Shown: positions 2,584 through 60,878, counted from the first letter of the stretch. The stretch is 64,000 nt of DNA from Zootoca vivipara (GCF_963506605.1 NC_083277.1:83762001-83826000); one strand, 5' to 3'. Program-made: numbers and translations. Notes: generated by a model not told the origin, from the sequence alone.

Positions 2584-5500
2584 ATGGATGACGGCTATGA
2601 GATTGAAGAGTATCAGAATGACATTGTTTCAGAGAAACTGCCCCATGCTTCGGAAATGTCCTCGAAACATGGAGGAACAGGTAAACATTTACACTGGCTT
2701 CCTTTCCCCTAATTTCAGTCCCGTGGCTTCCTCATTTCTCCTGAGCTGACCATGTGCTCAAAGGAACAGACTCTACACTCCCGAAGCATAAGCTTTAGCA
2801 ACATCATAGCCTCAAAATATTTGGGTAGGTGCCCTGACAGTTCCCAGCATGTGCAATTGTAAAGTAGAGTAATGTAAGGGTGGCTACTGCTTCCTTCCTT
2901 CCTTCTGGGCTCTGCCTCACCTTTAGGTGGTCTAGCCAGGTAGCTGTGTCCAAGGCTGCATGGAGGAACAGGTCTTGATACCAAGGTGCTAGCCAGCTCA
3001 AGAACAGCCTCTACAAAATTAAAGGGAGGGAGATCTAGTAACATCTCTCAAGAACAATGGGTCTGTGTTTGGAAGAATGCCTCTATAGGTGCATTAACTA
3101 AAAATAAAAACTCTATAAAATATGTGAGGTGCGACGGAGGGAGAGAGACCATTGCATATGGCAATATGTATCCAGCTTTCAATATATATACATTTTGCAC
3201 AGGGGAGACTTTTCTCTGAACAGCATTTCCCCAGGTTGGGACAACTCATTTTTGATTGTATGAAAATATTTTACTGCTTAATACAAAAGTAAAAAAGGAC
3301 ACCCCCCCAAAAACCCCCTCACAAAACAGCAAGAAGCATACAAGTCAAGGAAACCATTCATAAACCACATAGTAGCATTACTATAGATTACAAAATATAC
3401 AAACTGAACCAAAATGCCTAACAATGGTCCACAGGCCATCTATGATCACTGAGACAGTAGCCTTCTGTGAGAGCAAGAGGGATGGAAGTACATATTTGAG
3501 AATATAGAGCAAGAACGCTCAATCTGAAGTGCAGAATGCCTGGGACTTGCCCTTTCTCTCTCTAGAAACAGTGACTATTGGTGGTGAGAATAACAACCAG
3601 GGCTATGACTACATCATAGACGAGGACATGCTGATGAGAAAACTACCAGAGAAAGAACTGGAAACAGAGCAGGGTGAGAAATATAGATTATAATTATATA
3701 GATTATATTAAGATGATCTGCCTCTTACATGTTAAAAAATGTAAATGTGTCTAATGGAGTGTGCAATACTGAAAACAACAGTTTTTAAATTGACTTATGC
3801 TCCTCAGAAATGTGGCTAGTATTAAATCATTGATAAAGGCAATTTCCTCCCTCCTTGTTCTTGTGTTCCTAAACAGGAGTGGGCAGATCTCAGCCCTGAG
3901 ATATACCAATTGAAGACAGGAGTAAAACATATGTTGGGGACAGACATACACTTAGACCACTTCCAGACTATTTTGCAGATGGGAATTCAATTGAATTCCA
4001 GATTATCTGGAAACAACCTTAGACAGGATGAGTACATGCTCAGCCCATGTATTTGTTTTCAAGGTGGTAGAACTGAGTGCATATTCCTATCCCACAAAAA
4101 TCCACTCTTTGTCTCCCTCAGTTACCTGCCTAATTTGAAGGTACATAGTGTCTTCTTGGGTGTAGGTGTTTGCCTTTGTTAAACAATTGCGAATCGGAAT
4201 CCCTTTGCCAGTCTAATGTAAATCACAAACAGAGCCAACAGTAGACCCCAGTCTACCTTCTACCCATCCCTCAAAATCAAAATGTTAATGACAGAAAAAC
4301 ATAGAATATGGGCTGCCCTTTCAAGGAGCATCGCATATGTTGCCCTTGGAAATTATGACCCAGGAGCATTAGAGTTGCATGACCACCGTTCATATTCAAA
4401 CGTGCACAATGCAGATCAGGAAATGGTGGGATCTGCACTATTGTCTGTCTCAGGGATTGCCAGCATGGCACACACAGTGTCTTCTACAGGGCTTGTGAAA
4501 TTTCTCAGTGAATATCCCCTCAGAAATCCACGATTCGTAAGATACTGTTTGCTCTTCCTGTTTGCACTGGCTTGGCCTCTCCTACATGGAACACACTCCC
4601 TTAAAACATACCCACATTTCATTGGGTGATAGGATGGACACCCTCTCTCCCTTCTATTCTGAGCAGAAGTGCAAATACTGTAACTTTTCTCTGTGAGCAA
4701 GGATGGTAGTGGCTGGTGTAGGTGCCTTTCTTCCATTGATGGGCCTGCACCATTTTTGCATTTCTGTCTCTTTTTCTGCTCTTTTTTTAAAAGACATGGA
4801 ACCATTTTGTATACTGCCCCACCCTATGGTGACCATTTTGTGTTGTTCCACCTACCTTACCCACGGCACATTCTCAAAATTCCAAATGTGTCCACTGGCC
4901 CCCAGAAGCTGGCAAACTCTGCTCTATATAGAATATGGTAGTGGGTATCAGTAAGCTTGCATGCCCCCAGTCCATAGAGGGCAGGGATGACACTAACAGA
5001 CAGTCAGGGAAAATCTACTTTGTGGTTTCCCACTAACCACCTAAGCTCCACTCCTTCCTCCTGCTCTCTCTCCTTCCTGCTGCACAAGGCAGCCATGAAA
5101 CCTTCCTTCACAATGTAAACGTAGAATCCAAAGCCATCCTTCTGACAATGAATAACTGTAGGTACAGAACCTTTTGTTCTTTACCAAGGGAACTCCTGTG
5201 CACATATTTCATTTTAACTTTTAAAGCAATGCTGGTGATATGTGAATGAGATAGATGCTGGGTTGTGGGTTAGCTCCAGCTTCCAAGCATTTCTTTTTTA
5301 AAAACAATAACACACACCTCTGTTAATAACTACTGTGAATGTCTTCTCATTTCTTTCTAGCTCTGTTTGCATCCAGTTTTGGCAAATGGGACCGCCACAG
5401 GATAACCTTTGTCATAATCTACCTTCTGACAATCTTTTCCCTGATAATGGCAAATGCTGCCTTTGTGATTGCGTTTCTCAGATGTAAGTCCAGGTTTGAA

Positions 5501-8500
5501 GCTAATTGCTAGCTTGAGTCTGCATCCTCCATAGCAGGCCATGGGCAATGACTGCTCCAGGGCTGGATCAGCTGGGTTTATGTTTGTGGGTTCACTGACC
5601 AAGTCTTACAGCAGTTGCAGAAAAGAACATGAAATGGTCTGGCCATCCTTTCAATATTTAAACTCCTGCCCCTTAGGGTTTCATAGATTTTCAGACCTCT
5701 GCAGACTTGTGGCAAGGCATGACTTAGCTGCTGAAATTGTATACCCAGGCATTCACTGTACGGTATAGGAGCCCTAATACTGAAAGCCTGTGGTTGGTTA
5801 CAGTGATCTCTTAAACTTGATGGTGCCTTTCCAAGAGGACTGAGCTCTGCTCACCAGTTCTGTTCTTGAAAAAGAGCCATGGAGGAAACTAGCTCCCATC
5901 CTGCTATGTCAAAAACTGGCAAGGACCAGCAAGCACACATGCATATGCTGAGCCTGGATTCCGATGCTTTAGAGTTGGAAAAAGTTCAGAAAAGGGCAAC
6001 CAAAATGATCAAGGGGATGGAGTGACTCCCCGCTGAGGAAATGATGCAGTGCTTGGGGACTTTTCAGCTTAGAGAAAAGGCAAGCAAGTGGTCACATGAT
6101 AGAAATTCATAGTTTTATGCATGGCATGGATGAAGTGTGTGTGGAGAAAAGTTTTTCTCCTTTTCTTATAACCCTAGAACTCCCGGATATCCAATGAAGT
6201 GGAATCTTGGAGGTTTCAGGACAGATAAAAGAAAAAAGTACTTCATGCAGCACATAGTTTAACTATGGCATTCACTCCCAGTGGAGGCAATGGTGGCCAC
6301 CAACTTGGATGGCTTTAAAAGAGGATTGGGCAAATCCATGGAGGATAAAGCTATCAATGGCTGCTTAGCATGATGGCTCTTATCTGCCTCTATAGTTGCT
6401 CAAAACTGCAGGGCAGCAGGGAGGGTACTCTTGTGCTCAAATCCTGTTTGTGGGTTTTCTAAAGGCATCTGATTGGCCACTGTGAGAATAGAATACTGGA
6501 CTAGATGGGCCATTGGTCCAGCAAGCTTTTCTTATGTTCTAATGTTATGTGATGCTCAAGCTACTGTATGAATCAATTAACATTGTGTACTACAATATGG
6601 ATGAACAGAAAAGACAAACAGGCCACACGTGTGCATTTGCTAAGTGTCCGTCTGTAGCGGTATATGGTGCCACTCACAAAAACATCCTGTAAACAATGAG
6701 GCATTCATTCTGTGCTGCATTATTTCATGAATCTGTGTATTGCAGGCTTTCCAATATGTGCATTCAATTGGCATGAATTCCAGGACAAATGCTACTACTA
6801 CTCCAGAAAACAAGTCCCTTGGGAAAAGGCCAGGAGCACCTGCCAAGACCTGAGTGCAGATCTGGTGATTATAGGTAGTGAAAAGGAACAGGTGAGTTTT
6901 CCCTGTGATGGACATCTTGCACAAGAAGCCCCTCTTCTGCTACCAGGAATGTTATGTTTGCAACCTACCAGTACCTTAAATCTTCCCAGTCAGAACAATA
7001 AGGAAGGCAGCACACAAACCCAACTGCTAGGTGTAACCACATGGAAAGGTGTAGTTAAAGACCAGCTTGGGGAGCCCCGAATGACAGCTATTCCAATTAA
7101 TTCTACTTTCTTCTCAAATGAAATTCTATCTTTTATATTGCTACAAAGGTTGGGTGCCACCCCCGAGTGGTAACAAGATTCCAGGGAGTTCCAGGCACCC
7201 ACCCAGGGTCTGTGTTCCTTTGGAGAATTGAGAAATGGCAGAGACTTTAAGAAATATAGTTTATTCACCTATTTACACCTTCAGTCTGCATGTTGGAAGT
7301 CCCAATCTTACAGCATGGTGATCTCAAGCAGAACTTGTTTCCCAGAACCAGTGCAGCACAGGAGTCAAAGACATCTCTCCCAGCCAGTCTTCAGCCAGCC
7401 TGCCCAAGATGGAACTCACTCTTTCTTCTTCCCAGCCCACCTTGTTCTGAAGACTCTCCTTTCCTGACACCTGAAACACACACCCCATCACCATGGCAAC
7501 CTCTGTCTGCCCAAGCCCAAGAATCATTTTTGAGCCATCAACAACTTTTGTCATGTTTAATGCCCAGGTGAAGAGCTGGCTTGGGAAGGAAGCTTAGCCT
7601 GTTTCCCCCTACTGGCTTGCAATCTTCCCTTCAGTACTCTAAATAATCAAATTCCTACCATTTATTAATTTCTAGGGTTTAGAGGAGGTCCCCCTTCACA
7701 AATCTATAACAATTTGTTTTTCATTATGATCAAACAAAAGTAGATGTTTATTGCAGTGAAGAAGGTTCAATAAGAAAGCGGTGTCACATCCCTAAGGCAC
7801 TTTTCACATGGGCCAAACTTGTAAAAAGGTAAAGGGACCCCTGACCATTAGGTCCAGTCGTGACCGACCCTGGGGTTGCGCGATCATCTCGCATTATTGG
7901 CCAAGGGAGCCGGCATACAGCTTCCAGGTCACGTGGCCAGCATGACAAAGCCACTTCTGGCGAACCAAAGCAGCATACGGAAACGCCGTTTCCCTTCCCG
8001 CTTAGAGCGGTACCTATTTAACTACTTGTACTTTGACGTGCTTTCGAACTGCTAGGTTGGCAGGAGCTGGGACCGAGCAACGGGAGCTCACCCCGTTGTG
8101 GGGATTCGAACCGCCGACCTTCTGATCGGCAAGCCCTAGGCTCTGTGGTTTAACCCACAGCCCCACTTGTGTTCTTTGGTTCTTTTGCATCAAATGTAAA
8201 CAAACTAAACAAAAATGCCTCTTACTGAGGTGTCTTTGGTCCTCCTGGTCTGCCAGTAACTCTTCTGACTGGCAGAGGCTCTTTGAGGTCTCTCAAGCTG
8301 AGGTCTCTCCCAGATGTGCTTCTGGAGATTCTGCAGTACAAGTAAGCTTCTCCTTGCATACCTCCTAAATGCTTTCACTCTCCAGCGATACTTACAGTGG
8401 TACATCGACTTACGAATGACTCGACAACCGAATTTTTCGACTTACGAATGGGTGCAAATGGCTGCACGCTTATGAATTTCTTGACATCTGAACGGAAACC

Positions 8501-11500
8501 ACAGAGTTTTTAGTTTAGTTTTTGAAATGTTGTCGTGTTTGCCACCCTGGGCTGCTTCAGGAGGAAGGTGGGGTATGAATTCAATAAATATATAAAAGAA
8601 GTAAATAAAGATGTTCTTCTAATGTCAGCTTTCTACGTTCTAAATTCTTGTAAGAAGATACTGTTCCCCCCACTGTGTATTGAATGAAGTTTTTTTGACT
8701 CTAAAATCATGTCCAAAAACTGGGGTTGTCCAATACACGGATACTGGCATTGGGGGGGGGGGAGAAGCAGCATGCCGCTGGCAGGAGTGCAGCTTCCCCC
8801 GATGCTGCAGCGAGCGATCTGGGGTGTGTGTGTGTTTTCTGCCCACAGCTGCGTGGGGGGGGGGGAGAAGCTGCGCACTGCCACCCAGCTCGTTGGCAGG
8901 AGCGCAACTTCCCTCGATGCCACTGCATGCGGGAAATGATCTAAGGAGTGTTTCCTGCCCACAGCTGCATGGAGGGGAGAGGCTCAACAACTTTGGGCCA
9001 TCTCACCTCATTTTCTTAAAACTGAGTCCCCAAAAATGGGGGTGGGGGTATTATACATGGGGGCGTCTTATAGACTGAAAAATACGGTAACTGTTTTGCA
9101 AGAGTTAAAATTCCCTGTCCCAAAGTTGGGGCTTGGAGACAAGAAATCTCTGGCTGTGTGAACACATTCATTTTTGCTCTGCATTCAGTTTGGGATGCAG
9201 TGAGCACATGACGTTAGAAAAAATTCATATCTATCCTGTTCTTTCTTATGAAGCACCACGTGTCAATGTATCCACACACACACACACAAACACCGTCCAA
9301 ACCATCTTCAATTTGAATTGCGAAAAAGAACAACCTAGCTTCGCTTCAAGTTGTCAATGTGAAGCCTGAAAGGACAAGAAAAACAGGATGGCAGAAGTTC
9401 ACCCATCCCTCAGCATGCTAAGTGTGTGCTCTACTCCTGAACTATGTGAACATGTGCATATGATTTACTCACATTTGTACAGAGACACATGGGGTGCACT
9501 CCCCAGGCCCACTGCGGGGAACACTGGGGAGCAGGTGAGGAGAAAATCCATCAATTCTCTATCTTTTTCCTAGGATTTCCTCGTTTATAACATGAAAGAG
9601 AAGACCTCACAGTGGATTGGCTTAAGATACACGACAACAGAAATGGCGTGGAAGTGGGTGGATGGCACAAATGCCTCTTACACTTGAGCTTTCATTCTTT
9701 CAGTGGATTTATCTCAGATCTCTCGTGATGTTTCAAAAGCACAGCTGGCCAGCTATGTTAAAGAGAGTTATATCATGCAGCGGCTGGTCTTTTATGGATA
9801 AGAGAATGGATCCTGTTGGAGAACCCAGAGATACTAGATCTGGAAGGGTACAAAAATTGGCATGGTTGGCATTCCTATTTATTGTACGAAAAAGTAAGAG
9901 TACATAGAGGTTTCCTAAACCATCTAGTAAGAAAATCTTTATATAATATATGGGCCAAATTTAGAGGAATACTGGAACCAAAGATACCACTGTGGGCTTC
10001 ACCAGGAGAAGCTACAGCAGTGAAAAAACTAAATATGGAAACAAAATGGATAACATATAGAGAAATGTTGGAAGGGACAAAGGAAAAATTAAATTTGAAA
10101 GAATATGAAAAAATCAAATTGAACATAACAGATTGGTTCCAATATTTCCAGATAAGGCAGAGGTTTATGGAAGATCAGAAATTAGGAATTGCAGAAGAAA
10201 CATCAAAGTTTGAAAAAATAATAACGCAGAAGAAAGGAAAGTATATCTCGCAATTATACAATACTCTATTGGAATGGGAATTATTCGAGGAGCGAACAAA
10301 ACCAACCATGATAAGATGGGCCCAAGACTTGGGCCATAATATTTCAATAGAACAATGGGAAAAACTCTGGCAAAAAGATATAAAATTTACCCTATGTTAC
10401 ACACTAAGAGAGAACATTCTTAAGATGATGTACAGATGGCACCAAACACCAGACAAATTGGCCAAAATTTACAAAAATAGATCCCACATGTGCTGGAGGT
10501 GTGAAAAAGAAAGGGGTACATTTATGCACATGTGGTGGAGCTGTACAGAGGTGGGGGTGTTTTGGAATAATATATACAGTAAAGGTAAAGGGACCCCTGA
10601 CCATTAGGTCCAGTCGTGACCGACTCTGGGGTTGCGCGCTCATCTCGCATTATTAGCCGAGGGAGCCGGCGTAAGAACTAAAAAAATTATTAAAGTGTAC
10701 ATTTACTAAAAGACCAGAGACACTCCTGAGTATAATGCCAAATGAAATGGAGAAAACAAAGGTAACATTACTTATGTATGGAACAACAGCGGGTAGAGTA
10801 TTAATAGCGAGAAATTGGAAGAATAAGGTAGTGCCCAGTATAACAGACTGGCAAGCACTAATGATAGAATATATGCAACTGGCAAAAACAACTGGTAGAA
10901 TAAAAGGTCAAACTAAACAAAAAGTCAATAAGGAATGGGAAATTTTTGAAGAGTATTTGAAAAAGAATAAATTAAAAGAAACCCCATTGGCAGAAATAGA
11001 CTGTACCTTGTAAAATAAATTATTAGACATCAGTTGGAATGAAAATAAACAACACATATATCACTGTGCAAAATATAAAGGAAATAACAAGTTTAATTGG
11101 AAGTCTGTTCAGAATCTGGTGAAGAAAGTGTGAAGATGAAAGTAATAGAATAACGTGATTTTTAAGATTAGTGTGGGTTATGTGTATGTTTTTGTGATGA
11201 GTCGTATGTTGGGGGACGGGAATTATGTAGGTATGTATGTATGTATGTATGTATGAGTTAGTCGTGTAGGTATGTATGAATTAGTTAAGTGTTAGTATGG
11301 TGAGTTTATATGTCCGTAAATGTGAAGTTGTTTGTTTCAATCTATTTGCTTCATTTTTTTGTTTTAAACAATAAAGACTTTATATATATATAAAAGATAC
11401 ACAACAGAAGAAATGGCGTGGAAGTGGGTGGATGGCACAAATGCCTCTTACACGTGAGCTTTCATTCTTTCAGTGGATTTATCTCAGATCTCTCGTGACG

Positions 11501-13376
11501 TATCAAAAGCACAGCTGGCTAGCTATGTTAATTTGTGCCATCAAATTGTTGAATCTGTAGTTGTGGGCAGAAGGGAGGCCAGTTGGTGGTATGGGGTCTT
11601 TGTGCTGTGCTGTTGTATTGTGAGGAGAATGCTGTTTGTATGAGGTACCTTTTTCTCCTTTACATCGCAATGCAGTTGAAGCAGAATTCCAAGTACTGTA
11701 TGGTTGATACTTGGCCAATAAATTATTTTATTCTATTCTATTAAATGGGCAGTTTTGAGCTGAATACTGCAATGTGCGTTAAGTGTTTCTATCTGTGTTG
11801 GGGTAGCAGCATATTCAGTTTTTTAGTAAGTGGCCAAAAGAAAGCATTCTATCCGAATTCACATCACTCCTTCTGTTTCTCGCCTCCCCCCTCCAACCCC
11901 CGGCACCAAGTTGCACAATGCCTTGATATGGAATTCAGTATAGTCATACCTCGGTTTAAGTACGCTTTGGTTTGAGTACTTTCAGTTTAAGTACTCCGCG
12001 GACCCGTCTGGAATGGATTAATCCACTTTCCATTACTTTTAATGGGAAAGTTCACTTCAGGTTAATTACGCTTCAGGTTAAGTATGGACTTCCAGAACCA
12101 ATTACACTCATACTTTGGGTTAAGTACGCTTCAGGTTGAGTACTCCGCAGACCCATCTAGAACGGATTAATCCACTTTCCATTACTTTCAATGGGAAAGT
12201 TCACTTCAGGTTAAGTCCGCTTCAGGTTAAGTACAGACTTCCGGAAACAATTGTACTTAAACCGAGGTACCACTGTATCTCATCACAAGACTTCAGAAAG
12301 AGAGGAGTCACCCTCCTTGACCGAAAAAAGCTCAGCGCCCCTGGTCTCACAGCCACATGCTACAACATTGTTGGTGTGTGGAGGTGGGCTTGGAGTCTAA
12401 CTTCGGTAATTTCACTGGTTAGAGTAGTGGCAGCAAACTTTGCAAGGGATTACTTGTGTTCTGTCCAGAGCTGAGTGAGACCAGCTGGCTTGCCTTAGTT
12501 TGTGGCAGAAACTATAAAAGAAGCTGCTGCCTAGGGTTGTGCTGTTGCACTGGGTAAGGAAACAGCCCCCTTCCTATCTCAGCAGACATTTTTGGTAAAA
12601 AATTATAATTATAATTATAATTATTAAGTTTGTATTGAACAGCATTAACTGTTCATTGAACGGTTTGCTTTTTGCTTGACTGATACGCCACTATGTTCTT
12701 TAGCTCTGGTTCTATGGATGGTAATGTGGTCTTGTCTACTTCGTTGTTCAGCTTTGTTGTTGGGAGAGCAGCATGCAAATACTAAATCAAAATCAGCACC
12801 TGAAAGAAAAGCATCAGAAATGGCACTAAAGGGGCAAGGGGCATTTCTCAGTGGGTGGGGAAGAAGGTGAGCATGTGAAGAGGAACCACAAGGGACTAGT
12901 TACAGGTAGGTAGCCGTGTTGGTCTGAGTCGAAGCAAAATAAAAATTCCTTCAGTAGCACCTTAAAGACCAACTAAGTTTATATTTTGGTATGAGCTTTC
13001 GTGTGCATGTTCTGAAGAAGTGTGCATGCACACGAAAGCTCATACCAAAATATAAACTTAGTTGGTCTTTAAGGTGCTACTGAAGGAATTTTTATTTTGT
13101 CACAAGGGACTAGAAAGAGGGAGGCGAGGGAGAACTGACAGTCTGGCAAGTTCATCACCAGGCAAATGTTTGCTTCTTCTTCTTCTTTTCAGACAATGGG
13201 GACCTTCTAAACCGACTAGCAAAGCTGACCATGATTCACAAGAAGACTGTGTTGTTATGGAGCAAGGAAAGAACCATAAGTGGAGTAATGGCTTGTGCGA
13301 CTCCACCAATCTGTTTATTTGTGAAAAGAGCATGCAGCTTGCCTGTGTCTGGCAGGCTCTTTGTAGTTCTCACTGA
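2584..13376 (+). CDS. Gene A: type II transmembrane C-type lectin receptor, FCER2/CD23-like (255 aa if spliced normally; exon 5 donor is defective, so possibly a pseudogene)
   Basis: Exons 2584-2680 (MDDGYEIEEYQNDIV...), 3566-3673 (...QGYDYII...MRKLPEK), 5361-5483 (TM ITFVIIYLLTIFSLIMANAAFVIAFLR), 6746-6891 (CFPICAFNWHEFQDKCYYY...EKEQ), 9574-9683 (DFL...WIGLRY...WKWVDGT), 13193-13376 (QWGPSKPTS...EDCVVM...WSNGLC...ICEK...stop). Phases 1,1,1,0,2 sum to 768 nt in frame. All splice sites are GT-AG except TT at 9684-9685. Confidence 0.8.
5968..6545 (+). mobile_element. CR1 LINE 3' fragment
   Basis: ttggaaaaagttcagaaaagggcaaccaaaatgatcaagggg (LEKVQKRATKMIKG) and a CR1-type 3' UTR ending in cttatgttct. 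Confidence 0.75.
7824..8163 (-). mobile_element. Sauria SINE, near full length
   Basis: tRNA-like head with B box GGTTCGAATCC and an (ACCTTT)n-type tail on the minus strand; acttgt occurs on both flanks. Confidence 0.88.
9762..11393 (+). mobile_element. 5'-truncated L1-clade LINE (ORF2 C-terminus plus 3' UTR) inside gene A
   Basis: ORF2 C-terminal zinc knuckle CWRCEKERGTFMHMWWSC, GT-rich 3' UTR, AATAAA at 11370 and an AT/A tail. Flanked by a 138-bp direct repeat (9624-9761 and 11394-11531). Confidence 0.85.
10580..10673 (-). mobile_element. Sauria SINE 3' fragment nested in the L1
   Basis: Matches the 3' end of the full copies at 7824 and 34587 and interrupts the L1 ORF. Confidence 0.85.
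11941..12275. mobile_element. Tc1/mariner (Tigger-like) MITE with internal tandem repeats
   Basis: TIR similar to CAGTGGTACCTCGGTTTAAG; TA flanks. Confidence 0.75.
12900..13100. mobile_element. Penelope-like element remnant: 75-bp perfect inverted repeat with a hammerhead core
   Basis: Arms 12935-13009 and 13025-13099; CTGAAGA...GAAAGCTC at 13012-13041; 13-bp TSD cacaagggactag at 12887-12899 and 13101-13113. Confidence 0.8.
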
Positions 13377-13448: not shown

Positions 13449-13583
13449 NNNNNNNNNNNNNNNNNNNNNNNNNNNNNNNNNNNNNNNNNNNNNNNNNNNN
13501 NNNNNNNNNNNNNNNNNNNNNNNNNNNNNNNNNNNNNNNNNNNNNNNNNNNNNNNNNNNNNNNNNNNNNNNNNNNNNNNNNNN
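13449..13583. other. Assembly gap (135 N)
   Basis: Run of N bases. Confidence 0.99.
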
Positions 13584-14402: not shown

Positions 14403-15344
14403 TCATATCTTTTGGGAAAGTACCTTTTTAATGATTACCTTCCTTACCGCAACCTTGATTTCCTTGTTTCTCAAAGTAAAGATAATGGGACTGAGAAATG
14501 GAGTAATTATGGTGTAGGGTATGGAAATCAGTGTGTCATCTTCTAATGTGTCAGCTGTGCTCGATTTGAAATAAATGATGGAGGCAAAGGTATAGTGCAC
14601 ACTTACCACAATGAGGTGGGCGGCACAGGTGGAGAAAGCTTTCTGGTGGCCTTCAGTGGAGGGAATGCGCAGGATGGTGGAGAGAATTAAGATGTAGGTC
14701 ATCATGATGAACAGAAGGCTGCCAGCCAAACCCAGCATGCCAATAGTAGAGATCGACACTTCAGTCATATTATCGGCAGTGCAGGCTAACCTAACCACTG
14801 CCCTCATGTGACAAAAGAAGTGCCGGATGGCATTGGGGCCACAAAAGGGCAACCTAAGGATCTGTGCAGCCTCACTCAGAGATATGAGGAATCCCGCAAC
14901 CCAGGAAATGACTATGAGTCAAAGAATTACCCGCATGTTCATAAGGACAGGATAGCGCAAGGGGTGGCATATTGCCAGGTACCGATCATAGCCCATAGAC
15001 GTAAGAATGAGACAGTTTGTTGCACCCAGTCCAAGGAAAAGAAACATTTGTGCAGCACACCCTGCAAAAGAGATGATTCCGACTTTTGCTATCAGATCAA
15101 CCAGCATTTTGGGGACAATGACTAAACTGTAACAGGTTTCAGAGCAAGACAAAGCAAAGAGGAAGATGTACATGGGAACATGGAGGCTCCGATCAGAATA
15201 AACAACAGACATTATCAGCAGATTTCCTATCAGGGTTAGGATGTACATGAGCAGGAACAGGATGAAAAATGCAATCTGTAGCTCTGGACGTACAGAGAAC
15301 CCAAGCAGGATAAATTCTGTCACTTGTGTGTGGTTCTTCTTCAT
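14403..15344 (-). pseudogene. Olfactory receptor, class II family 10-like, full length (313 codons) with one in-frame TGA at codon 142
   Basis: Motifs GN, LHVPMYIFL, PKML, MGYDRYLAICHPLRY, HFFC, KAFSTCAAHL, PFLSPIIFTLRNKE. The two track ORFs are in the same frame and separated only by TGA at 14921-14919. An upstream acceptor with GCTAAC branch point is intact at about 15361-15388. Confidence 0.92.
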
Positions 15345-22540: not shown

Positions 22541-22541
<1 letters not shown>

Positions 22542-37945: not shown

Positions 37946-38004
37946 GGTAGGTTAAGGCTGCTCCAAGTCAGAGTTCTTGGGGCAGATGCAACACAGCCAC
38001 TTGT

Positions 38005-42700: not shown

Positions 42701-42874
42701 ACTAAGTCTGCCTCCTCGGTAATGACATGGTCTGGTCTTAGCGTAACTCCTCCTCCTACCCGTGACCACTGAGATCGGTTGTTCCAGTGCACACACCCCT
42801 GTGGAATCTGCCCCAGCCATTTTGCTTGCTGGGATCCCCTCCCGGGCAGCCCTGACCCCTCCCCTTAAAAACAA
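39791..42874 (-). CDS. L2 LINE ORF2: AP endonuclease plus reverse transcriptase (1027 codons open; first ATG near 42820)
   Basis: EN motifs CNARS, CVTETWL, LVYRPP, LGDFNIH, LDLVF, SDH. RT motifs YRPVSNL, QSGFR, DLSAAFD, GVPQGSVL, YADD. L2-type C-terminus SRLDYCN...LQLIQNAAAR...LHWLPV. Confidence 0.93.
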   Translation of the reverse strand: MFLRGGVRAAREGIPASKMAGADSTGVCALEQPISVVTGRRRSYAKTRPCHYRGGRLSRCLRTIPASRSGPDRTDIGISKGYPHDLKVLLCNARSMMNKTTAIHDLIVDGGFDLACVTETWLEEADGPVLGAACPPGFSYAQQPRPSGRGGGVAVIFRKSLVCTRRPIGKTQFSECMFWKLGNRGSTGFLLVYRPPRCTKDSLPELLQVVSDVLLETPSLVVLGDFNIHADTTLQGAARDFVESMATMGLSLNKSGPTHSRGHALDLVFTSMDVGDLTLSKSETKEVPWSDHFLVQLDFSATLSLCREVGPIRMVRPRYLMDPIGFQRVVGDVLSHVDGLSADSLVARWNAELTSAIDCLAPKRPLRLHGARTAPWFSPALRAMKQSLRRLERRWRKTHFESDRTRARAQLRAYQVAMATAKRTFFTVSIASAENSSRRLFQVVRNLAEPPAPSGPSTGHMISCNDFAKFFADKVAQIREEVDSTVGAGPGRGSARVLSSQVLWDQFQSVTSEDVDRLLRRMKPTTCLLDPCPSWLIKASQEGLGDGLRGLVNASLHEGAFPDPLKEAVIKPLLKKPSLDPANTANYRPVSNLPFLGKVIERVVAEQLQARLEEADHLDPFQSGFRPHHGTETALVALVDDLRRARDKGKSCFLVLLDLSAAFDTIDHNILLDRLEGLGAGGTVMQWFRSFLLGRVQKVVGGDECSDPWALTCGVPQGSVLSPMLFNIYMQPLGEIIRGFGLGVHQYADDTQLYLSFKSEPVKAVKVLCECLEAVGGWMAANRLRLNPDKTEVLFVGDRRRAGVEDSLVLNGVTVPLKDQVRSLGVILDSQLSMEAQVNSVSRAAVYQLHLVRRLSPYLPTDCLSRVVHALVISRLDYCNALYVGLPLKVTRKLQLIQNAAARLVTGSGRRDHITPVLKDLHWLPVRFRAQFKVLVLTFKALNGLGPVYLKERLHPHRSARTLRSSSEGLLAVPSLREAKLQGTRQRAFSVVAPTLWNALPLEVKENNYQTFRRHLKAALFREAFNV

Positions 42875-44866: not shown

Positions 44867-45433
44867 TCAGCGGCCATCCAGGGCTTTGTCACGTGCTATT
44901 ACTGACTCATCAAATTTGATCATGAGGGTGGTTCCCTTGTGCCAGTGGGCTGTCACCTTGGCAGGGAAGCCGCTGCAAGTGAGCATAGCCTCCACGATGC
45001 CCGCTGTGAAGGAAGCACAGTTGAGTGTGCTGTTCTCCTTGGGAACAGAAATGTAAGTATTGATAAGAGGCTCCTTCTCGATGATGTAGTAAGTCTTGTC
45101 ATCGTCATTGGCTTGCTCCAGCTTGTCAGCCTCCTTCCCAAAGAGAGCCTTCCATACAGTAACCTTGATGAACAGGAGAATGTTGATGACCTTGGTTTCT
45201 CTCTTACCATTTTTCTCCCGCATCACCAACACATCCAGGATACGGGCACCCACCTGCTGACCTAGCTCAGAAAGTTTGTTCTGAAGCTCAGAAACAGAGT
45301 AGACCCTGTTCTGACAGTACTGCACAATCTCAGAAAACAATAATGAAAAGGCACTGAGGCTAACATCAGTCTTGGGTCGGGTGAGTGACCGTTCAAGGAT
45401 AGCAGACTTTCCACGGGTAAAACGTGCGTCCAT
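44867..45433 (-). CDS. TRAPPC5: Trafficking protein particle complex subunit 5, 188 aa, single coding exon
   Basis: MDARFTRGKSAILERSLTRPKTDVSLSAF...ENSTLNCASFTAGIVEA...GFPAKVTAHWHKGTTLMIKFDESVIARDKALDGR. A splice acceptor (ctcaatag|catcATG) lies just upstream of the ATG. Confidence 0.97.
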   Translation of the reverse strand: MDARFTRGKSAILERSLTRPKTDVSLSAFSLLFSEIVQYCQNRVYSVSELQNKLSELGQQVGARILDVLVMREKNGKRETKVINILLFIKVTVWKALFGKEADKLEQANDDDKTYYIIEKEPLINTYISVPKENSTLNCASFTAGIVEAMLTCSGFPAKVTAHWHKGTTLMIKFDESVIARDKALDGR

Positions 45434-51900: not shown

Positions 51901-53493
51901 CTGCGCCCATCTGCCTGGGTTGCCCCAGCCACTCTAGGCAAATCACAACAAAAAACAGTAAAAGCACAATACAACATCACACACTAAAACCTTTGGCTCC
52001 CAGCAGTGGTGAAGCTTCAAGCTCCAGTGGGGGGAGCAGAGAGCAGGCAGGGGCATGACTGGTGCGCGTCCCGGGGGCATGGCACGCGTCCTGTGGGCGT
52101 GGCGTGCTGCCTGTGGGGGCATGGCGCCCAGCGCAGGTTGAGGGGGCAGCTGCGATGGCACCCCACCGGGATCGTGCCGCGGGGGGGCGGTGCGCTCCAC
52201 CCTGCACCCCTGTTCTTCCGCCAGTAGCCCCCAGACACAGTAAGGTTCCCCAACCCCAGTATAGAGGGTGCCCTCCTGAACATTTGTGAAGCCCAGAAGC
52301 AGGACATGAATGGAGAAGCACCTTCCCACTTGTGCTCCTTAGCAGCTGGTATTCCAAGGCATGCTGCCTGTGGTACTGAGTTAATATACAGCCATCATAA
52401 CTAGTAACCATTAATAGCCTTATCTATCATTAATTTCTCTAATCCTCCTTTAAAGCAAACCAAGCTCTTCATATATCTTATGGTATTGAATTCAAGGGCA
52501 AGTAGAAGTCCTTGCATTGGGCTTCCACGGATGGGACTCTCTGTTGAATCCTGTTCCATGGTTTTAACTACAGTATATGCTGTGTGAAGAAGTACTTCCT
52601 TTTATATCTTCCAATCTTTAGCTTCATTGGATAGCCCCAGGCTCTAGTATTAAAAAATACTAAGATGCTCTCTTCACTTTCTTCACACCATGAAGCACAT
52701 GTCTTTATACACGTCTATCACGTCCCACATCTTCTAAACTGAAAAGCCCCAAATGATGTAACTTTTCTTCATAGGGAAGCTGTTCCACCCCCTCCATTGG
52801 TTGGGCTTTTCTGAAACCTTAAAGGATGGTTTTCACTGTTTCTTTCTCTAGATTCCATAGAAAGTTTGTCCCCATCTGAAAGGGATTATGAGAATGTTAT
52901 ACCTCCCCATTTGCTGAGATGGCAACAACCAACCCCACAGCAAACACAGAAAGCGGATACAGGTGAGTGATTCTTAACAGCACAATAATGTCTAGGGCAG
53001 GCATGTCAAACCTGCGGCCCTCCAGATGTTTTGGCCTACAACTCCCATGATCCCTAGCTAGCAGGACCAGTGGTTGGGGAAGATGGGAATTGTAGTCCAA
53101 AACATCTGGAGGGCCGCAGGTTTGACATGCCTGGCGTAGGGCTTCAATCTGGTTTGGGGATCGGGAAGAAGCCATTGCATGCTCTGCGGAAATGCCTGTG
53201 AGGTCTCGCCCTATCACCCCATCCAAAGGGCCCACTAGAACCTGTTTAAGTAATTGCTTGCCTAGATCACTTCCACATAAATAAACAAACTATCCTACTG
53301 GAGGAGTAGGTTGAAGCAGATCATGAGGTGAGTGACCACACCATGTTGACATCTTTCCAAGGCCTTCATTATTTTTAACCAATAGGATGTTTTGTTAAAT
53401 GACTCACTGATGCTGATAGGTCAGCTTTGTGGAGAAAGGTAGAGTGGATGTGTCCTTGAACGATACACCTCCCTTAAATTAAGGTTGTATACA

Positions 53494-53538
<45 letters not shown>

Positions 53539-56500
53539 GTCGTTTAGTCGTTTAGTCGTGTCCGACTCTTCGTGACCCCATGGACCAGAGCATGCCAGGC
53601 ACTCCTGTCTTCCACTGCCTCCCGCAGTTTGGTCAAACTCACCTTTATAGCACATTCAAAACATATCATTTCCATATAAGCAGTGCTTTTTTTCCTAGAC
53701 AGAATGGTGCCGGAATGCACCTCCCTCAGATGTCCCACCCCAGAAGCCCTCTGTGGCGTTCACACAGAGCCCCTGGTTGTTCCACGGACTATTGACCCTG
53801 TGCCACCACGTCTATTCTCTTCCACTGCCACCAACCAGGTTTCCCCAGTAATATATTCAGAATCAGTCAGGTTGTAACGTATTAACAAAGATTCCAGTTT
53901 ACTGTGAACGCAAACAAGTTTTAAATACTTTGAAACACTGTAATCTGATTCACTCTCTCTGTGTCTAACCCACTCTGACTCCTGTGCCTCCCACCCACAA
54001 GAAACCAACTGAACTAACTGTCTCTCTATTTCCAACTGTCTTCCCCACTGTCTAAACCTCTGGCTAAGCCTTTTAAAAGCAGGTAGGCTCTGCCTCTGGG
54101 CTTCCCTATTGGTCTACCTATTAACCCTTTCTCTCCCCCTGTACAGACATTTCCAAAAGAATGGGCAAATGCCACACCCTCCTTCTCCTGCTTTGATCAA
54201 ACACCATCTATTACAGATCACATATCAGGATGCCTGGTGCTTATCTGCCTGCTGTACACACTAGGCCCATCTGTCCTTTCAGAAGGATTGAGCCTAGAAG
54301 ACATGGAAGTTGGTGGTCTGAGGCACCACTTAACAGGCTCATGGAGAGCTTGTCTGAGGCACAGGGCAGAAGTCTTGATAGAATAAAGCTATGAAGAAAA
54401 GAGCAGCCAGTGCCTGCCCACCCCAACCCCAGCCGGCTTAGCCCTCTGAGGCCCAGGGCAAGTATACCCACCTGTGTCCCCCTCCCTCTGCACGGGCCTG
54501 TCAATATACATTAGGGGGGGGTTCACCCCAAGTATCATCCTCCACCACCCTACCTCATCTTTGAACCACAGATCCCACCATCTTCCATCCACAGCAGGTG
54601 TAGTGGGTGGAGGAAGTGGGCTGCACTTAAGCATGTCATCTCATATACACATGCATTTTACATACATACAGGTCACATCTGGCCCCTTACTCCGTGATAC
54701 CAGCTATTTTGTGTGTGTGTGTATGCTATAATAATCACTCTTATTGGTTATCTGCAGGTGTGCCCACGCCCACCAGATTTACTGATCATACGGACTGCTG
54801 TTGTCGGAGAGCTTCTGTTGTCCCCCTCTACATCTTGGTGTTTGTTTCCCTGTTAATAGCGTCAGCTGCCTTTGTGCTGGCCTTTCTGAAATGTAAGTTC
54901 AACAGAGGACCTGGAAGGGCACATCATCCTATGCCGCTAGTCATTTTAGTCCAAACATTCTCAAACTTTATACTGTGAGAGGACCTGTTAATGTGCCACA
55001 AGAAACAGACTAAAAAAATAAGATTCCTGCTAGCCTAAAGTACCCACTCCCAGAGGAGGGATGCCACTGTGCTTCCACATTATGTACAGTTCTTGCCTTC
55101 TTCCATTCAACCCCACCAGAATGGGGAGAGTCATGTTACCACATCTTTCTGCATTGGCTCTGGTCTGATCAGTCACTGCTAATGCAGCAGGCCCAGAGCC
55201 ACTCAGATGGAAATGCAGCAGTTGGGCTTCTCGAGTGGGTAAAGGAAGTTTTCACTCTTAGCATGCTCATGTAATGAACCCTTTTTGGATGTAAGAATGA
55301 AATGTACCTTCAGCTTCTCTCCAGAAAAAAGTGCACTTATCAGAAGTTCAGGAAGTATTGTACTAATTGATGTTAGTGCAAGAGGTGTGTTGTGAGGAGG
55401 AGTTGAGAAAACGTGGCACCCTCTTGGTTTGGCGCCCAGTGTGGACAAACCGGCTAGTACCCCTAAATCCGCCTCTGTCTGTGGCCCTCCTGATGCTGTT
55501 GGCCTCCAACCTTTGTCAGCCCCAGCCAGCATGGCAAGTGGTCAGGGTGATGGGAGTTGTACTCTACTAGCATCTAGAGGGCCACAGGTTCACCATCTCT
55601 GATACACAAAATCAAAGCCTTTTGCTGTGGACAGCTGATGTGGTCACTTCCTGATGTGATTTTCATGGAACTATTGTGTATGTGTGAAGTTGTCAAGGAC
55701 CAGTTGATTAAATATTCAAATACAGATTTGGCTCTTTGAGAGCATAGCTGGCTGCCTTGGGTTTCTGAGGATAGTTCAGTTATGTTGCTGTAGCACCGGC
55801 ATGTACACTGGAAGAACAGTAGCCAAGTTGTTAGAGGGAAGATGGTGTTAGGAGCTCTACAGCCCAAAGGAATAGAGGAAGGACAGGGCTGAATTATAGG
55901 TTAAACCAGGCACCCCCAAACTGCGGCCCTCCAGATGTTTTGGCCTACAACTCCCATGATCCCTAGCTAACAGGAGCAGTGGTCAGGGATGATGGGGATT
56001 GTAGTCCAAAACATCTGGAGGGCCGAAGTTTGGGGGTGCCTGGGTTAAACCCACAGCCTGTTGTGACGATCCATGGGCAATGGATCAAAACCTCATGTAC
56101 TCTCTGCTGGGCTGGGTAGAATACATTTGTAATATATAAATGTGCAAATATCCACAGCATTAAGCACTGGGGAGCCCAGTTTTGGATGGTTGAGTATGAC
56201 TAGCAAGCTAGGCTGGAGTTTTCATGATGAGTGCATATAATCTTTTCAGTACTATGGTTTCTTATCCCAGGGCTCTGTGTGTTTCAGTTATTCCTCAGTG
56301 TCCAGGTGGCTTTCAGAAGTACCAGACAAAGTGCTTTTACATCTCCATTCATAAACATACCTGGGCAGAAGCACGGAGGGACTGCAGTAGGCGAAGTGCG
56401 CCCCTGGCAACAGCTGAAGCGGTGAGCATTGGTGACTTTCCTGGAACTAATGGTTGGGTACCTTGCATAGAGAACCAAACCTATATTCCAACCCTATTCC

Positions 56501-59500
56501 CACAATATTAATTAATTATTAATAATTAGATTAATAATTATTAATTGATTAGATTTCTGTGATGCAGGACACGCACACACAAACTGTTCTTCTCATTCTT
56601 GGTCCTCATGGTTTTCTGTGATGATCCATCTGCTACTCAGTTTCTTTACTTAACTCTATCCCTAGGTACAGTAGTGGCATACAATTGCAGCCTCTTATGT
56701 ACCATGTGCGACCTTTCCCCTTCCCAGAATTTTACTCAGATTCCTGCTTCACAATTTTCTCCTGCCATTTGTTTCCTGAGCACTGCCAAATGTGCTGAAG
56801 GCACCTCATTGGCCACTGTGGGATGCTGAACCCAACAAAGAAGAAATATGTCCCAGCCCACCCACCCACAAAAATGGGATCTAAATATCAAAATTATACA
56901 AAATAGAATAGTATGAACTAGTTATATAAAGCAACTTTATATCACAGATGAGAACAAATTCAAGCTGAGTGCTAATCTACACTTCTGCTTGGACTATGAC
57001 TTCCCTTGAACTGGACAATATGATGCAGCCTAGAATAGCATTAGCTGTTTTTTGTTGTTTTCTGCTGCTGCTGCTTGCTCATGTTAAGCTGTTGTCTACT
57101 AAGATACTTTTCGTATGTACTACAGTGGTACCTCGGGTTACAAACACTTCGGGTTACAAACTCCGCTAACCCGGAAGTAGTAAATCGGTTTGAGAACTTT
57201 GGCCCAGGATGAGAACAGAAACTGCACACCGGTGGTGCGGTGGCAGCGGGAGGCCCCATTAGTGAAAGTGCTCCTCACGTTAAGAACGGTTTCGGGTTAA
57301 GAATGGACCTCTGGAATGAATTAAGTTCGTAACCCAAGGTACCACTGTACTGGCAAGGCAGGTGTCCCCCATCTTATATTTGTGCGCTGATTCTTCCTGA
57401 CTAAGTGTAGAACTTTACATTTGAGCCTATTGAATTTCATTCTGTTAGTTTGGGCCCATCTTGAATCCTGATTCTGCCTTCTGTGGCATTGGCCCCCCCC
57501 CTCCCAGTTTGGTGTCATCTGCAAATTGGATGAGCATCCCCTTAATTCCTTCATCTAAGTTGTTTATAAAGACGTTGAACAACCATGGGCACAGCACAGA
57601 ACCCTATGGCAACCCACTTGTCCCTTTTTTCCGGGACGACGAGGAACCATTAGTGAGCACTCAGTCAGTCAATCTCTTTTAGTTCGTTAAATTAGTGGTG
57701 CAGTTGCTATAGTCCAGAGCTGTCTCAGAGGTCCTAATTTGGAGGGTAACTTGTGGTTCCTTTTTAAGTGTTGCTTACACCCTTCTGAATTGAGGGGGAG
57801 GGCAAAGAAAACCCTTTCCTGCTTTCCGAAGACGGCTCAGAAACTTCAGCTAGTGCAGAATTCAGCAGCCAGGTTGCTCACCGGAGCAAGATGGTTTGAG
57901 CATATTACACGGATCCTGGTCTGACTGCACTGGCTACCAATTAGTTTCCGGGCCCAATTCAAAGTGCTGGTTTTGACCTATAAAGACTTAAATGACTCAG
58001 GACCACAATACCTCAAGGACCGTCTCTTTCCATATGAAACTACCCGGACCCTGAGATCATCTTCTGAGGCCCTTCTTCATGTGCCTCCTCCTTGAGAGGT
58101 CAGGAGGGTGGCAACACGAGAACGGGCCTCCTCTACAGTGGCTCCCCATCTATGGAATGCTCTCCCCAAGGAAGTTCGCCCGGCACCTTCATTATACACC
58201 TTTAGGCGCCAGGCAAAAATGTTTCTTTTTAACCATGCCTTTGGTTGATCTGATTGACATCCTATGCCCTTTTAAAATGTGGCTCTTTTATGGGGGGGAC
58301 GTGTTATTGGGTTGTTGTTTTTATTTTGGTTATATATACACAGTATATTGTGGTTTTTATGTTTATCTTTTCTGTGAACCACCCTGGAAGGCTGGAACCT
58401 CCGGGTATAGGGCGATATATAATAGTAGTAGTAGTAGTAATAATAATAATAATCTCTCCTTAGATCAAGGAGGTCAATCTAAACCTTGAAAATAATTCTG
58501 AATACTGGGTTGACAACCCTGAAGGAGAACAGAATAAAGTGACTGACAGGTAAGTAAGCTTCATTTACTACTGTTGGCCTCCTATCAGCTCACAAGAATT
58601 TTATGACCACATGAAACTGCAAATGTGTGCTGCACTTTTCAAAAGAGAACATTATGAAATCAGCTGATAAGGGTCACATCATGGGCTGTAGGTATCCATT
58701 AAGCTCCAGTAGAGAGAGAACAAAGACCAGTGTGGGCTAGGTAGAGCAATTATATGAATGCCAGTGTATATAACCTATAGTTTGTCTGATGAATTCCCCA
58801 CAAGTTTATTTTCCCCAGAGATCCTGCATCATGTATAACACAAGATTCCATCTCAGGGCCCATCCTGCTTCTTGTCCTGTGCCTAGAAAACATGGCTCTG
58901 GGTGATTTCCCACTTGTCCCATGCTTTCTAGGCATAAATTTAGTGGTTTTGCCTTTGCCCCGCCACTTTCCCCCAGAAAACCTGCTCTTTAGCTCTAATT
59001 TGGTGCAAGCAGAAGTATGGATGAGCCTTCAGTGTATCTCAGTTTTCTTGAGAAACCCTACTAGTGTGGGTTAAGGCCTAGATATGGCAAGTTGTAATTT
59101 TGACTAACCGAAGCACTCAGAAAGCTGGTCCGTCATATCAGAATTCTCCAGAGGAGTTTATATATGGAGAAGTTACCACATTAAAAATACTGAGAACCAA
59201 GCCTTTAGGTGGGCACCACATGTTATTCGAGAGATGACAAACCTACCCGTGCTTCCCTAAGTAAATTGTCATTGCAGGTAATTGTTTCCACCTCCTGATG
59301 TTTCTGTAGGAACTTACAGCGCAGACCTGTAAAGGTTAAGGGGTTCAGTGTCAATCGAAACCCCTGAACCGGTAGGCTGTCACCACTCCTGTTAACAGTC
59401 CACCCCCAACTCAGACCCGGGAGATGCCACACTCCTGCAAGATTCCAGGAAATAAGAATTAAAACGCTACTCTCTGCTGTGTGTAGCCTCCAGCAGAACA

Positions 59501-60878
59501 AAACACTTACATGTTAGCCCAGTGTGACCAAAGAGATCTAAGGCACCGGTTTAGATCAAGGCAAGTTTCCAAATAACCACATAAAAGTATAGCACATATA
59601 TATATTTATTGAAGATTTCTAAAATAGCAGAATGAGAACCCTGTTACCCAATTAGAATGAGAGATTTTACAGTTGGTGGGAAGTGCTGATCAGTTAGGAA
59701 GGGGATTGGCCAACCAAAGGAAGCCAGTTCTCTTTGATATCACATCATTGTGGTTTATATTATCCACAAAGGGAAATTTTATCATTAGCATTTGCCAACA
59801 ATCCAGTGAGGTGTGACAAGGTGTGTGAATGGGGCCAACCTCCTTCTGAAGTTTCATGTCAAATGGAGTGGTGGTCCACCCTCTGTGCGTGTGATGCTTT
59901 TGACATGAGTTGTTCTCTCCTAGGCAATGGAGTACAGGGTTTCTAGATGTAGATGTAGATTCTCCTAAAGTGATTGAGAGGGAGAGAGACTGGATTTTTT
60001 TTGTTACCTGTGCAGTGAATCAGCATGTTCAACACCTAAGAAATCCTTCATCTGGACCTGCCTTTAAGGTGACTTCCGCCCTATTTTCACTGGAATTAAC
60101 CTCCTTTGTTCACTATTTTTTTATGTGTACATTTTATTCATAATGGCAGCCCATGTGAGTTCCTCTGCTGTCTTCCCATTTTTTTCAGACCTGATAAGGG
60201 CCTCTTTTTGTTGTAAAATACAGTTGCAGCACCAGTCTGTCTAGTGTGGACTGGCAAAGTACTATGGACACTTTTGAGTTACTGTAGCTTTTTAATTAGT
60301 AACACCCTCCTAAGTAGTTGATTCCTTTTCAGTCACTAGCCATGACTTTCCTGAATTGTCCTTCATAAGTCAGTTCCTATTCCCTGCAAATTACAGGAGT
60401 GGAGGAGTTTGTTGTCATTAATTGGTTGTATTTATGTTAGACACTTGGAGTGTTTCATTTTGAAATTGGAGAGCTCAGATGTACAGTACAAAAATGCTCC
60501 AATAAAATAAATGAGTAATATATAGTGGAACTTTGCCCAATGAAAACAGCATTATCTAAAGTGTCATGTAGGACCACCGTTTTAATTCTGCTTCCAACTG
60601 ATTGCAGAAAGGCAAGGAATGCCTCACCAATGCTAAAGGGTCCCGATCAGTTGAAAGCAATCTACCGTAAGTGTCCTTGTGTGTTTCTTAACTGACACTT
60701 GTAGAATTGGGTCATTCTTTCCCAGGAAAAATGAAGCATGTTATTCTTTCTTTATAGATCTCAGAAGACAGAAAGTGAAAACTGTATGTTTGTCTCTTGG
60801 AAAAACAATACAATTGCTCCTTCACAAATTTCTTGCACCCATCATTTGCATTACATTTGTGAAAAATATCAAGCATAA
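48914..60878 (+). CDS. Gene D: divergent type II transmembrane C-type lectin-like receptor, about 201 aa (first coding exon tentative)
   Basis: Candidate exon 1 is 48914-48932 (ATG GCA CGT CGG AGG CCA G|gtagga; low confidence). Further exons: 52852-52962 (ERDYENV), 54758-54892 (CCCRR plus TM LYILVFVSLLIASAAFVLAFLK), 56288-56421 (CPGGFQKYQTKCFYIS...WAEARRDC), 58464-58549 (EYWVD), 60758-60878 (ENCMFV...SC...YICEK stop). Phases 1,1,1,0,2 match genes A-C, all six CTLD cysteines are present, and the total is 606 nt in frame. Confidence 0.75.
49320..49535 (+). mobile_element. Older tRNA-derived (CORE/MIR-like) SINE
   Basis: A-box-like TAGCGGTTAAAG, GGTTCAAATCC, GTGACCTTGGGC core. Confidence 0.55.
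52250..52810 (-). mobile_element. CR1 LINE 3' fragment (old)
   Basis: Reverse-complement similarity to 5968-6545. Confidence 0.55.
52998..53133. mobile_element. hAT-type MITE
   Basis: Same family; imperfect TSD gtctaggg/gcgtaggg; lies 35 bp into an intron of gene D. Confidence 0.85.
53494..53642 (-). mobile_element. Bov-B 3' fragment with an expanded (CAA)n tail
   Basis: Same 3' end as the other Bov-B copies. Confidence 0.85.
53752..54176. mobile_element. Solo LTR (425 bp)
   Basis: TGTGGC...GCCACA inverted termini; 5-bp TSD ccctc on both sides. Confidence 0.7.
55907..56042. mobile_element. hAT-type MITE
   Basis: Same family; 8-bp TSD ggttaaac. Confidence 0.88.
57123..57347. mobile_element. 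Tc1/mariner (Tigger-like) MITE
   Basis: CAGTGGTACCTCGGGTTAC TIRs; TA TSD. Confidence 0.8.
57350..57660 (-). mobile_element. CR1 LINE RT fragment
   Basis: Minus strand encodes IKFADDTKL and NRMKFN...KCKVLHL. Confidence 0.7.
57819..58453 (+). mobile_element. L2 LINE 3' fragment ending 10 bp before exon 5 of gene D
   Basis: Encodes KLQLVQNSAARLLTG...HITRIL...LHWLP; (AGT)n(AAT)n tail. Confidence 0.85.

Follow-up and report, generated by a model that had tools for sequence, protein, structure and literature searches.

The 64,000-nucleotide (nt) stretch of the Zootoca vivipara genome analysed here (GCF_963506605.1 NC_083277.1:83762001-83826000; hereafter the window) holds a cluster of genes for C-type lectin-like receptors arranged around TRAPPC5. 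Three of these genes, A, B and C, have six coding exons each, and a fourth, D, is a decayed relative. TRAPPC5 is flanked by C (6.9 kb away) on one side and by D on the other, so the placement of family genes on both sides of it, as described in the initial annotation of this sequence, stands. That annotation took the four genes for an expanded set of CD23 (FCER2)-like receptors.

The receptor genes and their neighbours

Gene models were obtained by cross-comparison of the gene regions and inspection of every splice junction (Table 1). A, B and C are built on one plan, with two cytoplasmic exons, one transmembrane (TM) exon and three lectin-domain exons in phases 1,1,1,0,2. The same plan had been ascribed to all four genes, but it does not extend to D, which is decayed and in which no exon 1 could be recognised. 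The splice sites of B and C are all AG/GT apart from a single GC donor after exon 4 of C, and the two translations match letter for letter the Z. vivipara proteins XP_034963867.2 (B) and XP_034963863.2 (C). Both open reading frames (ORFs) are intact and 88-92% conserved with Podarcis. Each encodes a complete Pfam Lectin_C domain (PF00059; 6e-18 in B, 9e-20 in C) that covers 104-106 of the 107 profile positions and has the conserved cysteines, the WIGL motif and the core of its superfamily, that of C-type lectin-like domains (CTLDs); A is truncated, and Pfam has no match on the D exons tested. In the AlphaFold 2 (AF2) model of B isoform X1 (P0064), the TM helix spans residues 90-122 and the CTLD begins at about residue 130, with a predicted local distance difference test score (pLDDT) of ~90 across the CTLD. 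With a cytoplasmic tail, one TM segment, a C-terminal CTLD encoded by three exons and, ancestrally, an EPN/WND site, the genes have the make-up of group II type II receptors. Their nearest classes are likewise group II lectins, and in Atlas the gecko CTLD has hepatic lectin, ASGR2 and CD209 as its closest clusters. Isoform X1 arises from exon 3 of B, where two phase-compatible donors lie 17 nt apart (27359-27376) and the downstream one is used. Both B isoforms, of 262 and 269 amino acids (aa), are in the database, the longer with KC.SEEG added after the TM helix and before the lectin domain.

For gene C, transcript evidence was sought at positions 32100-38000 in two sets of RNA-type contigs and in two raw RNA runs. 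A 627-nt contig joins exons 5-4-3-2-1 and an 823-nt contig joins exons 6-5-4. The two contig runs (X1 and X2) together cover all six exons, and the joins coincide with the junctions of the model, those at the GC-AG intron and at the immediate passage from TM exon to lectin domain among them. The splice model proposed for C is in this way confirmed by RNA, which uses the upstream donor of exon 3. Neither raw RNA run gave reads on the exons of C, so its expression is low or tissue-restricted. The contigs differ from the reference at G185A, P187L and G188R, clustered in one surface loop (exon 5, 33497-33505), and also carry D248E and V104A, while exons 1 and 4 are identical to the reference; these differences may be allelic variation in the part of the receptor that binds, or may reflect another lineage within the species. 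Two repeats within introns of C (34464-35054 and 36631-37221) are covered at very high depth on both strands in all RNA runs, and look like abundant SINE-like (short interspersed nuclear element) dispersed repeats rather than gene transcript.

Gene A is broken at exon 5 (9574-9683), which is followed at 9684-9685 by TT in place of a GT donor and then immediately by an in-frame TGA. Were exon 5 spliced, the product would have 255 aa; the TT donor leaves a truncated product of 195 aa, and the database model XP_034963869.1 (195 aa), which equals the first 195 aa of gene A, ends at that TGA. A 138-bp unit, made up of 60 nt from the 3' end of exon 5 together with 78 nt of intron, is directly duplicated here, and the copies flank a 1.6-kb 3' fragment of an L1 element that ends in AATAAA plus a TA run and retains a trace of zf-RVT in an ORF at 9816-10604. 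The first copy belongs to an exon 5 that is complete apart from the donor base, and the second holds only the 3' 60 nt of the exon, with its GT donor intact. Gene A was lost through a G-to-T change in the donor; the L1 insertion next to the exon is old and need not, by itself, have killed the gene. The reading frame of exon 6 is still open, and the Lacerta agilis model of A is likewise incomplete.

The exons of D were scored against a family hidden Markov model (HMM) built without D, and only its TM exon and first CTLD exon reach significance. Scans by ORF, donor site and blastn gave no credible candidate for exon 1, Pfam had no match on any D exon tested, and the branch of D in the CTLD tree measures 3.8 substitutions per site. 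Judged by its sequence, D is a decaying copy of the family. The juxtamembrane CCCRR noted in it at the outset does lie in its TM exon. A repeat at 57690-58460 (+) with an AGT/AAT trinucleotide tail ends exactly at the acceptor of the short exon 5, and may have displaced the half of this exon that encodes WIGL.

HMM scans of the window found no additional family exons, and a resistin gene was looked for in the 64 kb without success. Between A and B lies an olfactory receptor gene (14403-15344, -) whose two halves match Pfam 7tm_4 positions 1-111 and 137-280; they are separated by an in-frame stop at 14919-14921, so the gene is probably a pseudogene. Between C and TRAPPC5, a long interspersed nuclear element (LINE) has an ORF2 of 1027 aa without interruption (39791-42874, -; endonuclease 7e-14, reverse transcriptase 1.5e-37), and it may be a young element.

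Table 1. Genes, exons and other features of the cluster, numbered from the first nucleotide of the window
Feature	Position	Strand	Remarks
Gene A	2584-13376	+	exons 2584-2680, 3566-3673, 5361-5483, 6746-6891, 9574-9683, 13193-13376
138-bp direct duplication	9624-9761 and 11394-11531	+	blastn, 131/138 identical (95%)
Gene B	29829-23544	-	262 aa; exons 29829-29712, 29061-28945, 27501-27376, 25886-25741, 24489-24380, 23715-23544
Gene C	37945-32213	-	262 aa; exons 37945-37843, 36451-36338, 35890-35765, 34145-34000, 33569-33460, 32402-32213
Gene D	52852-60878	+	decayed family member; exons with AG/GT sites, phases 1,1,0,2
D exon 2 (candidate)	52852-52962	+	DYENV present; starts as exon 2 does in A, B and C; phase 1 to 1; pattern alone
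D TM exon	54758-54892	+	carries CCCRR; E 7e-5
D first CTLD exon	56288-56421	+	E 6e-9
D exon 5 (candidate)	58464-58549	+	86 nt; no WIGL; sole phase-compatible candidate
D last exon	60758-60878	+	marginal, E 0.03
TRAPPC5	44867-45433	-	single coding exon, 188 aa; Pfam TRAPP 4.2e-44
Assembly gap	13449-13583	.	135 N; begins 72 nt past the stop codon of gene A (13374-13376); outside every coding exon

Distribution, tails and sugar-binding site of the family

A profile of exon 4 was searched against 1.8 billion representative sequences, and although multi-CTLD proteins dominate the returns, full-length proteins of the family were recovered. Further members came from three homologue searches (queries P0082 and P0155, and alignment A4) and one cluster look-up. 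Members were found in the lacertids Podarcis muralis, P. raffonei, P. lilfordi and Lacerta agilis, in Elgaria multicarinata, Varanus komodoensis, Anolis carolinensis and A. sagrei, in the geckos Eublepharis and Paroedura, and in the amphisbaenian Rhineura. They share an N-terminal M-D/E-D-x-Y-Q-N-E motif, YEYI or YDYI, RCFPxCP straight after the TM helix, and a C-terminal tail of the ACVWQSL..SH or ACxLQSP..PH type. This is no local expansion but a squamate-wide family, of which this genome has one copy broken (A) and one decayed (D). A literature search covering FCER2/CD23 in reptiles, squamate expansions of lectin receptors and TRAPPC5 synteny found no description of it.

Annotation pipelines have named the members inconsistently, as ASGR2-like, CD69-like, CLEC2B-like, CLEC2D-like, CLEC4E-like, CLEC10A-like, CD209 antigen-like A/B/C, nattectin-like, lactose-binding lectin l-2-like, PLA2R-like or simply "uncharacterized". 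FCER2 is not among the database names of any member found, and the three homologue searches returned no FCER2, CLEC4G, CLEC17A, ASGR or CD72. Outside squamates, the strongest matches came from a turtle (one fragment, 1e-23), a rodent (one CD209-like protein, 2e-25 by profile) and fish (CD209-like and hepatic-lectin-like proteins, ~1e-11).

In a tree of the CTLDs, the genes of the window branch as (A,(B,(C,Elgaria))), with supports of 85/81, 98/96 and 96/91. The grouping of C with Elgaria suggests that the B/C duplication is older than the split between lacertids and anguimorphs. Within this tree, gene A has its nearest relative in Varanus P0155, at 50% identity.

The proteins are type II immune-type lectin-like receptors with tyrosine-rich tails of their own, much as the initial annotation had proposed. 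The cytoplasmic part preceding the TM helix is ~85-95 aa long, acidic and disordered in the AF2 model, and is encoded by two exons and the start of the TM exon. It contains several YxN motifs (YQND, YWNE, GYENA), YxN being the Grb2-SH2 consensus, as well as YEYI or YDYI; A-type tails also have DxDMLM. GYENA occurs in B and C, and DYENV in the candidate exon of D. This DYENV is close to the YENI of mammalian MCEMP1, the upstream neighbour of TRAPPC5 in mammals. Between B and C, the tail is 64% identical at the amino acid level, against 35-45% for the CTLD exons, with an overall ratio of nonsynonymous to synonymous substitutions (dN/dS) of ~0.5. On the sequences compared, this pattern fits a conserved signalling end and a diversifying binding end.

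The sugar-binding site is variously preserved. EPN occurs with WND in Eublepharis, with WHD in Varanus and with WNA in Paroedura. Among the lacertid copies, the motifs are KPT with WSN in A and EPS with WKD in B; C lacks EPN and has WNN. The Glu before Cys is also missing from B and C. Given the EPN/WND-type sites of the gecko and Varanus proteins, the ancestral receptor was probably a mannose-type Ca2+-dependent lectin, a capacity abandoned in the lacertid copies. The likeness of KPT and EPS to the EPT of human CD23, first taken as a sign of kinship, has to be read otherwise. In cow CD23 the site reads Glu-Pro-Asn, and mouse CD23 retains its sugar-binding residues; both bind sugars, and loss of the site arose in the primate lineage (PMC6791321). 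Since both these mammals and the gecko and Varanus members keep the site, the likeness is convergent, EPT being a derived primate state.

Origin of the family

In mammals, the gene order is STXBP2-RETN-MCEMP1-TRAPPC5-FCER2-CLEC4G (PMC4467842), which bears out the initial statement that FCER2 and MCEMP1 are neighbours of TRAPPC5. The lizard cluster lies next to TRAPPC5 as FCER2 does, and this location supports an origin from the FCER2-CLEC4G-CD209 block. At this point, I consider it likely, if well short of certain, that the genes are a squamate subfamily of neck-less group II (ASGR/CD209/CD23-type) receptors, most likely derived from one or more ancestral lectin genes of the TRAPPC5 block. Apart from a single doubtful fragment from a turtle, the searches made here found the subfamily in squamates alone. 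The ancestral gene or genes would have given rise to FCER2, CLEC4G and CD209 in mammals, with no single mammalian orthologue assigned to the lizard genes. The ancestral form, resembling the gecko and Varanus proteins, would have been a Ca2+-dependent receptor for mannose, N-acetylglucosamine or fucose-type sugars, with putative endocytic or signalling motifs of the YxxPhi and acidic di-leucine-like (DxDMLM) kinds. Lacertid A, B and C, having lost most of the Ca2+/sugar ligands, would now probably have non-glycan (protein) ligands or act as membrane-proximal co-receptors. In their tails, YxN (GYENA, YQND) may serve as Grb2-SH2-type sites, and YEYI or YDYI as Src-SH2 or YxxPhi-type sites. With such motifs in their own tails, the receptors probably need no partner chain to signal or to internalise. 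Two copies in this genome, B and C, are intact, and transcription is seen for C; A is truncated by its donor mutation and D is decaying.

Several points weigh against this account. The homologue searches, being word-based, have low sensitivity, so that members outside squamates may have escaped them, and the turtle fragment reached 1e-23. The backbone of the tree lacks resolution where it connects to the gecko, Varanus, Anolis and turtle sequences and to the mammalian CD209-like protein; with so weak a CTLD backbone, monophyly of the squamate family rests on the shared tail, TM and C-terminal motifs, and not on the tree. The Grb2, Src and AP-2 readings of the tail are consensus matches only. 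Besides the runs that express C, two other RNA runs have no reads on its exons.

What, then, of CD23 itself? That the genes are co-orthologues of FCER2, duplicated in squamates and putatively binding immunoglobulin (Ig) heavy chains such as IgY, seems to me unlikely. They do adjoin TRAPPC5, with the squamate-wide copy A convergent with it, as FCER2 is in mammals, and their N-terminal acidic tyrosine motif is CD23a-like. When the family profile is compared with solved single-domain structures, human CD23 (112-108 bits) stands near the top, with SRCL (119), Mincle (109) and BDCA-2 (105), and above DCIR (103), cow CD23 (101), DC-SIGNR (100) and DC-SIGN (98). For B and C alone, CD23 scores 62-65 bits versus 44-53 for DC-SIGN/SIGNR1. 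With the family profile, as with B and C singly, CD23 comes out ahead of both DC-SIGN and ASGR, and its alignment span is the longest, N- and C-terminal extensions included. Foldseek with the AF model of B isoform X1 puts human CD23 at ranks 1-7 (E 6e-11, TM-score 0.82-0.84, 31% identity), with DC-SIGNR next (1.5e-10). However, the score differences that separate CD23 from Mincle, BDCA-2 and SRCL do not exceed noise, and re-ranking with VIA-align ties it with NKR-P1B, NKp80, SRCL, MGL and others (Z 17.6-19.1). The gecko member ranks CD23 (69-78 bits) below SRCL, Dectin-2, Mincle, BDCA-2 and DC-SIGN(R), and exon-by-exon searches of solved structures do not tell the lectin families apart. Atlas, for its part, has CLEC6A-, CLEC4A-, hepatic-lectin-, ASGR2- and CD209-like clusters as neighbours. 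The lizard genes have an extra Cys before and after the domain, the latter taken at first as a CD23-like sign, but the same pair occurs in the mammalian CD209-like protein P0184, and the resemblance to EPT is to a state derived within primates. The most telling difference concerns the ectodomain: in CD23 the lectin domain is carried by an extended neck that mediates trimer formation and is defining for this part of the protein (PMC6791321). No neck or coiled coil lies between membrane and lectin domain in the lizard gene models, the RefSeq proteins, the RNA contigs of C or the AF2 model, the TM exon splicing directly onto the first CTLD exon. Of the kinship with CD23 first proposed, there remains a place for CD23 among the best solved-structure matches and the shared position at TRAPPC5, but the neck is missing and the lead is within noise. 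The lizard genes are therefore classed not as CD23 but as a neck-less group II subfamily at the CD23/CLEC4G/CD209 locus. CD209/DC-SIGN does not describe them either, for they are without tandem neck repeats, and the EPN site that gecko and Varanus members keep has gone from the lacertid genes A, B and C.

It is distinctly improbable that the genes belong to the Dectin-2/DCIR lineage (CLEC4A-E, CLEC6A) or to a lineage of natural killer (NK)-type lectins, and lie near TRAPPC5 by chance. This would explain their compact six-exon structure, the scores of Dectin-2, Mincle, BDCA-2 and DCIR equal to or above that of CD23, the Atlas clusters nearest C (CLEC6A-like, CLEC4A-like and CD94-like), and the NCBI names CD69-like, CLEC2B-like, CLEC2D-like and CLEC4E-like. 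It does not explain why, in contrast to NK-type lectins, the ancestral members have kept EPN together with WND or WHD, why the extra N- and C-terminal Cys pair matches the CD209-like protein (and CD23 too), or why the gecko CTLD falls in Atlas beside hepatic lectin, ASGR2, CD209 and collectin-12. Moreover, the location is the FCER2/CLEC4G/CD209 block rather than the NK complex; neither a place in that complex nor the ancestral lack of a Ca2+/sugar site, both of which mark group V of the NK complex, is found here. There is scarcely any likelihood that the cluster is mostly decaying and without present function, its duplicates turning into pseudogenes. The donor of A exon 5 is indeed dead and the Lacerta agilis model of A incomplete, D has neither a WIGL core nor a Pfam match, the sugar site is missing from A, B and C, and two RNA runs have no reads on the exons of C. 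Yet the ORFs of B and C are intact and conserved with Podarcis, the overall dN/dS is ~0.5 with a conserved tail, C is spliced in two runs, and the CTLD is modelled with confidence.

The squamate subfamily of neck-less group II receptors, which I prefer, leaves room for one bolder step, though its truth would surprise me greatly: that these genes preserve the receptor that ancestral amniotes had at the TRAPPC5 locus, a lectin without a neck that signalled by itself and whose halves were split in mammals into MCEMP1 and FCER2. MCEMP1 would then be the half with the type II tail, its YENx Grb2 motif and no lectin domain, and FCER2 the half with the lectin domain, raised on a newly gained stalk. 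With its DYENV exon and TM segment kept and its lectin domain decaying, gene D would be a living example of an MCEMP1-type transition. Before IgE, CD23 would have served to recognise sugars; in lacertids, B and C may have moved independently to protein ligands, with immunoglobulin among the candidates. CD23 is the sole Fc receptor known to be built on a lectin fold. A sauropsid family at its locus, with older members that have a sugar site, offers a concrete route to the question of what CD23 did before IgE. The practical gain is modest, an uncharacterised, lineage-specific family of immune receptors that annotation pipelines have named without consistency.

Comparison with known receptors

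Among lectin receptors the architecture is unusual: the CTLD is set right at the membrane, and the long tail to which it is joined has several SH2-type motifs. CD23 is, like the lizard genes, a type II protein with a C-terminal long-form CTLD from three exons, encoded next to TRAPPC5; it too has an extra Cys on both sides of the domain, and has lost the sugar-binding Ca2+ site in some lineages. Unlike them, it has an extended trimerising stalk and a short cytoplasmic part in place of a long tyrosine-rich one, and the lizard genes are multi-copy, lack the CD21-binding C-terminal extension, and are not known to bind Ig.

CD209, CLEC4M and CLEC4G belong to the same mammalian block and have an EPN-type site, as do the gecko and Varanus members. 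The extra Cys pair of P0184 and the name CD209 antigen-like, given by NCBI to several members of the family, add to the likeness. CD209 differs in its neck repeats and its tail, and its similarity to lacertid B and C is below that of CD23 (44-53 versus 62-65 bits). The genes of the Dectin-2/DCIR cluster (CLEC4A-E, CLEC6A) are likewise compact six-exon type II genes with similar scores, but, unlike the lizard genes, they lie in the NK-complex region, and their neck is short, as are their tails, with either an immunoreceptor tyrosine-based inhibitory motif (ITIM) or FcR-gamma pairing; they are not known to have the extra N- and C-terminal Cys pair.

Finally, MCEMP1 is also a type II protein encoded next to TRAPPC5, and its YENI motif, which binds Grb2-SOS (PMC10090139), is like the GYENA and DYENV of the lizard tails. 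It has no lectin domain, unlike the lizard receptors. Its orientation relative to TRAPPC5 is different from that of gene D.

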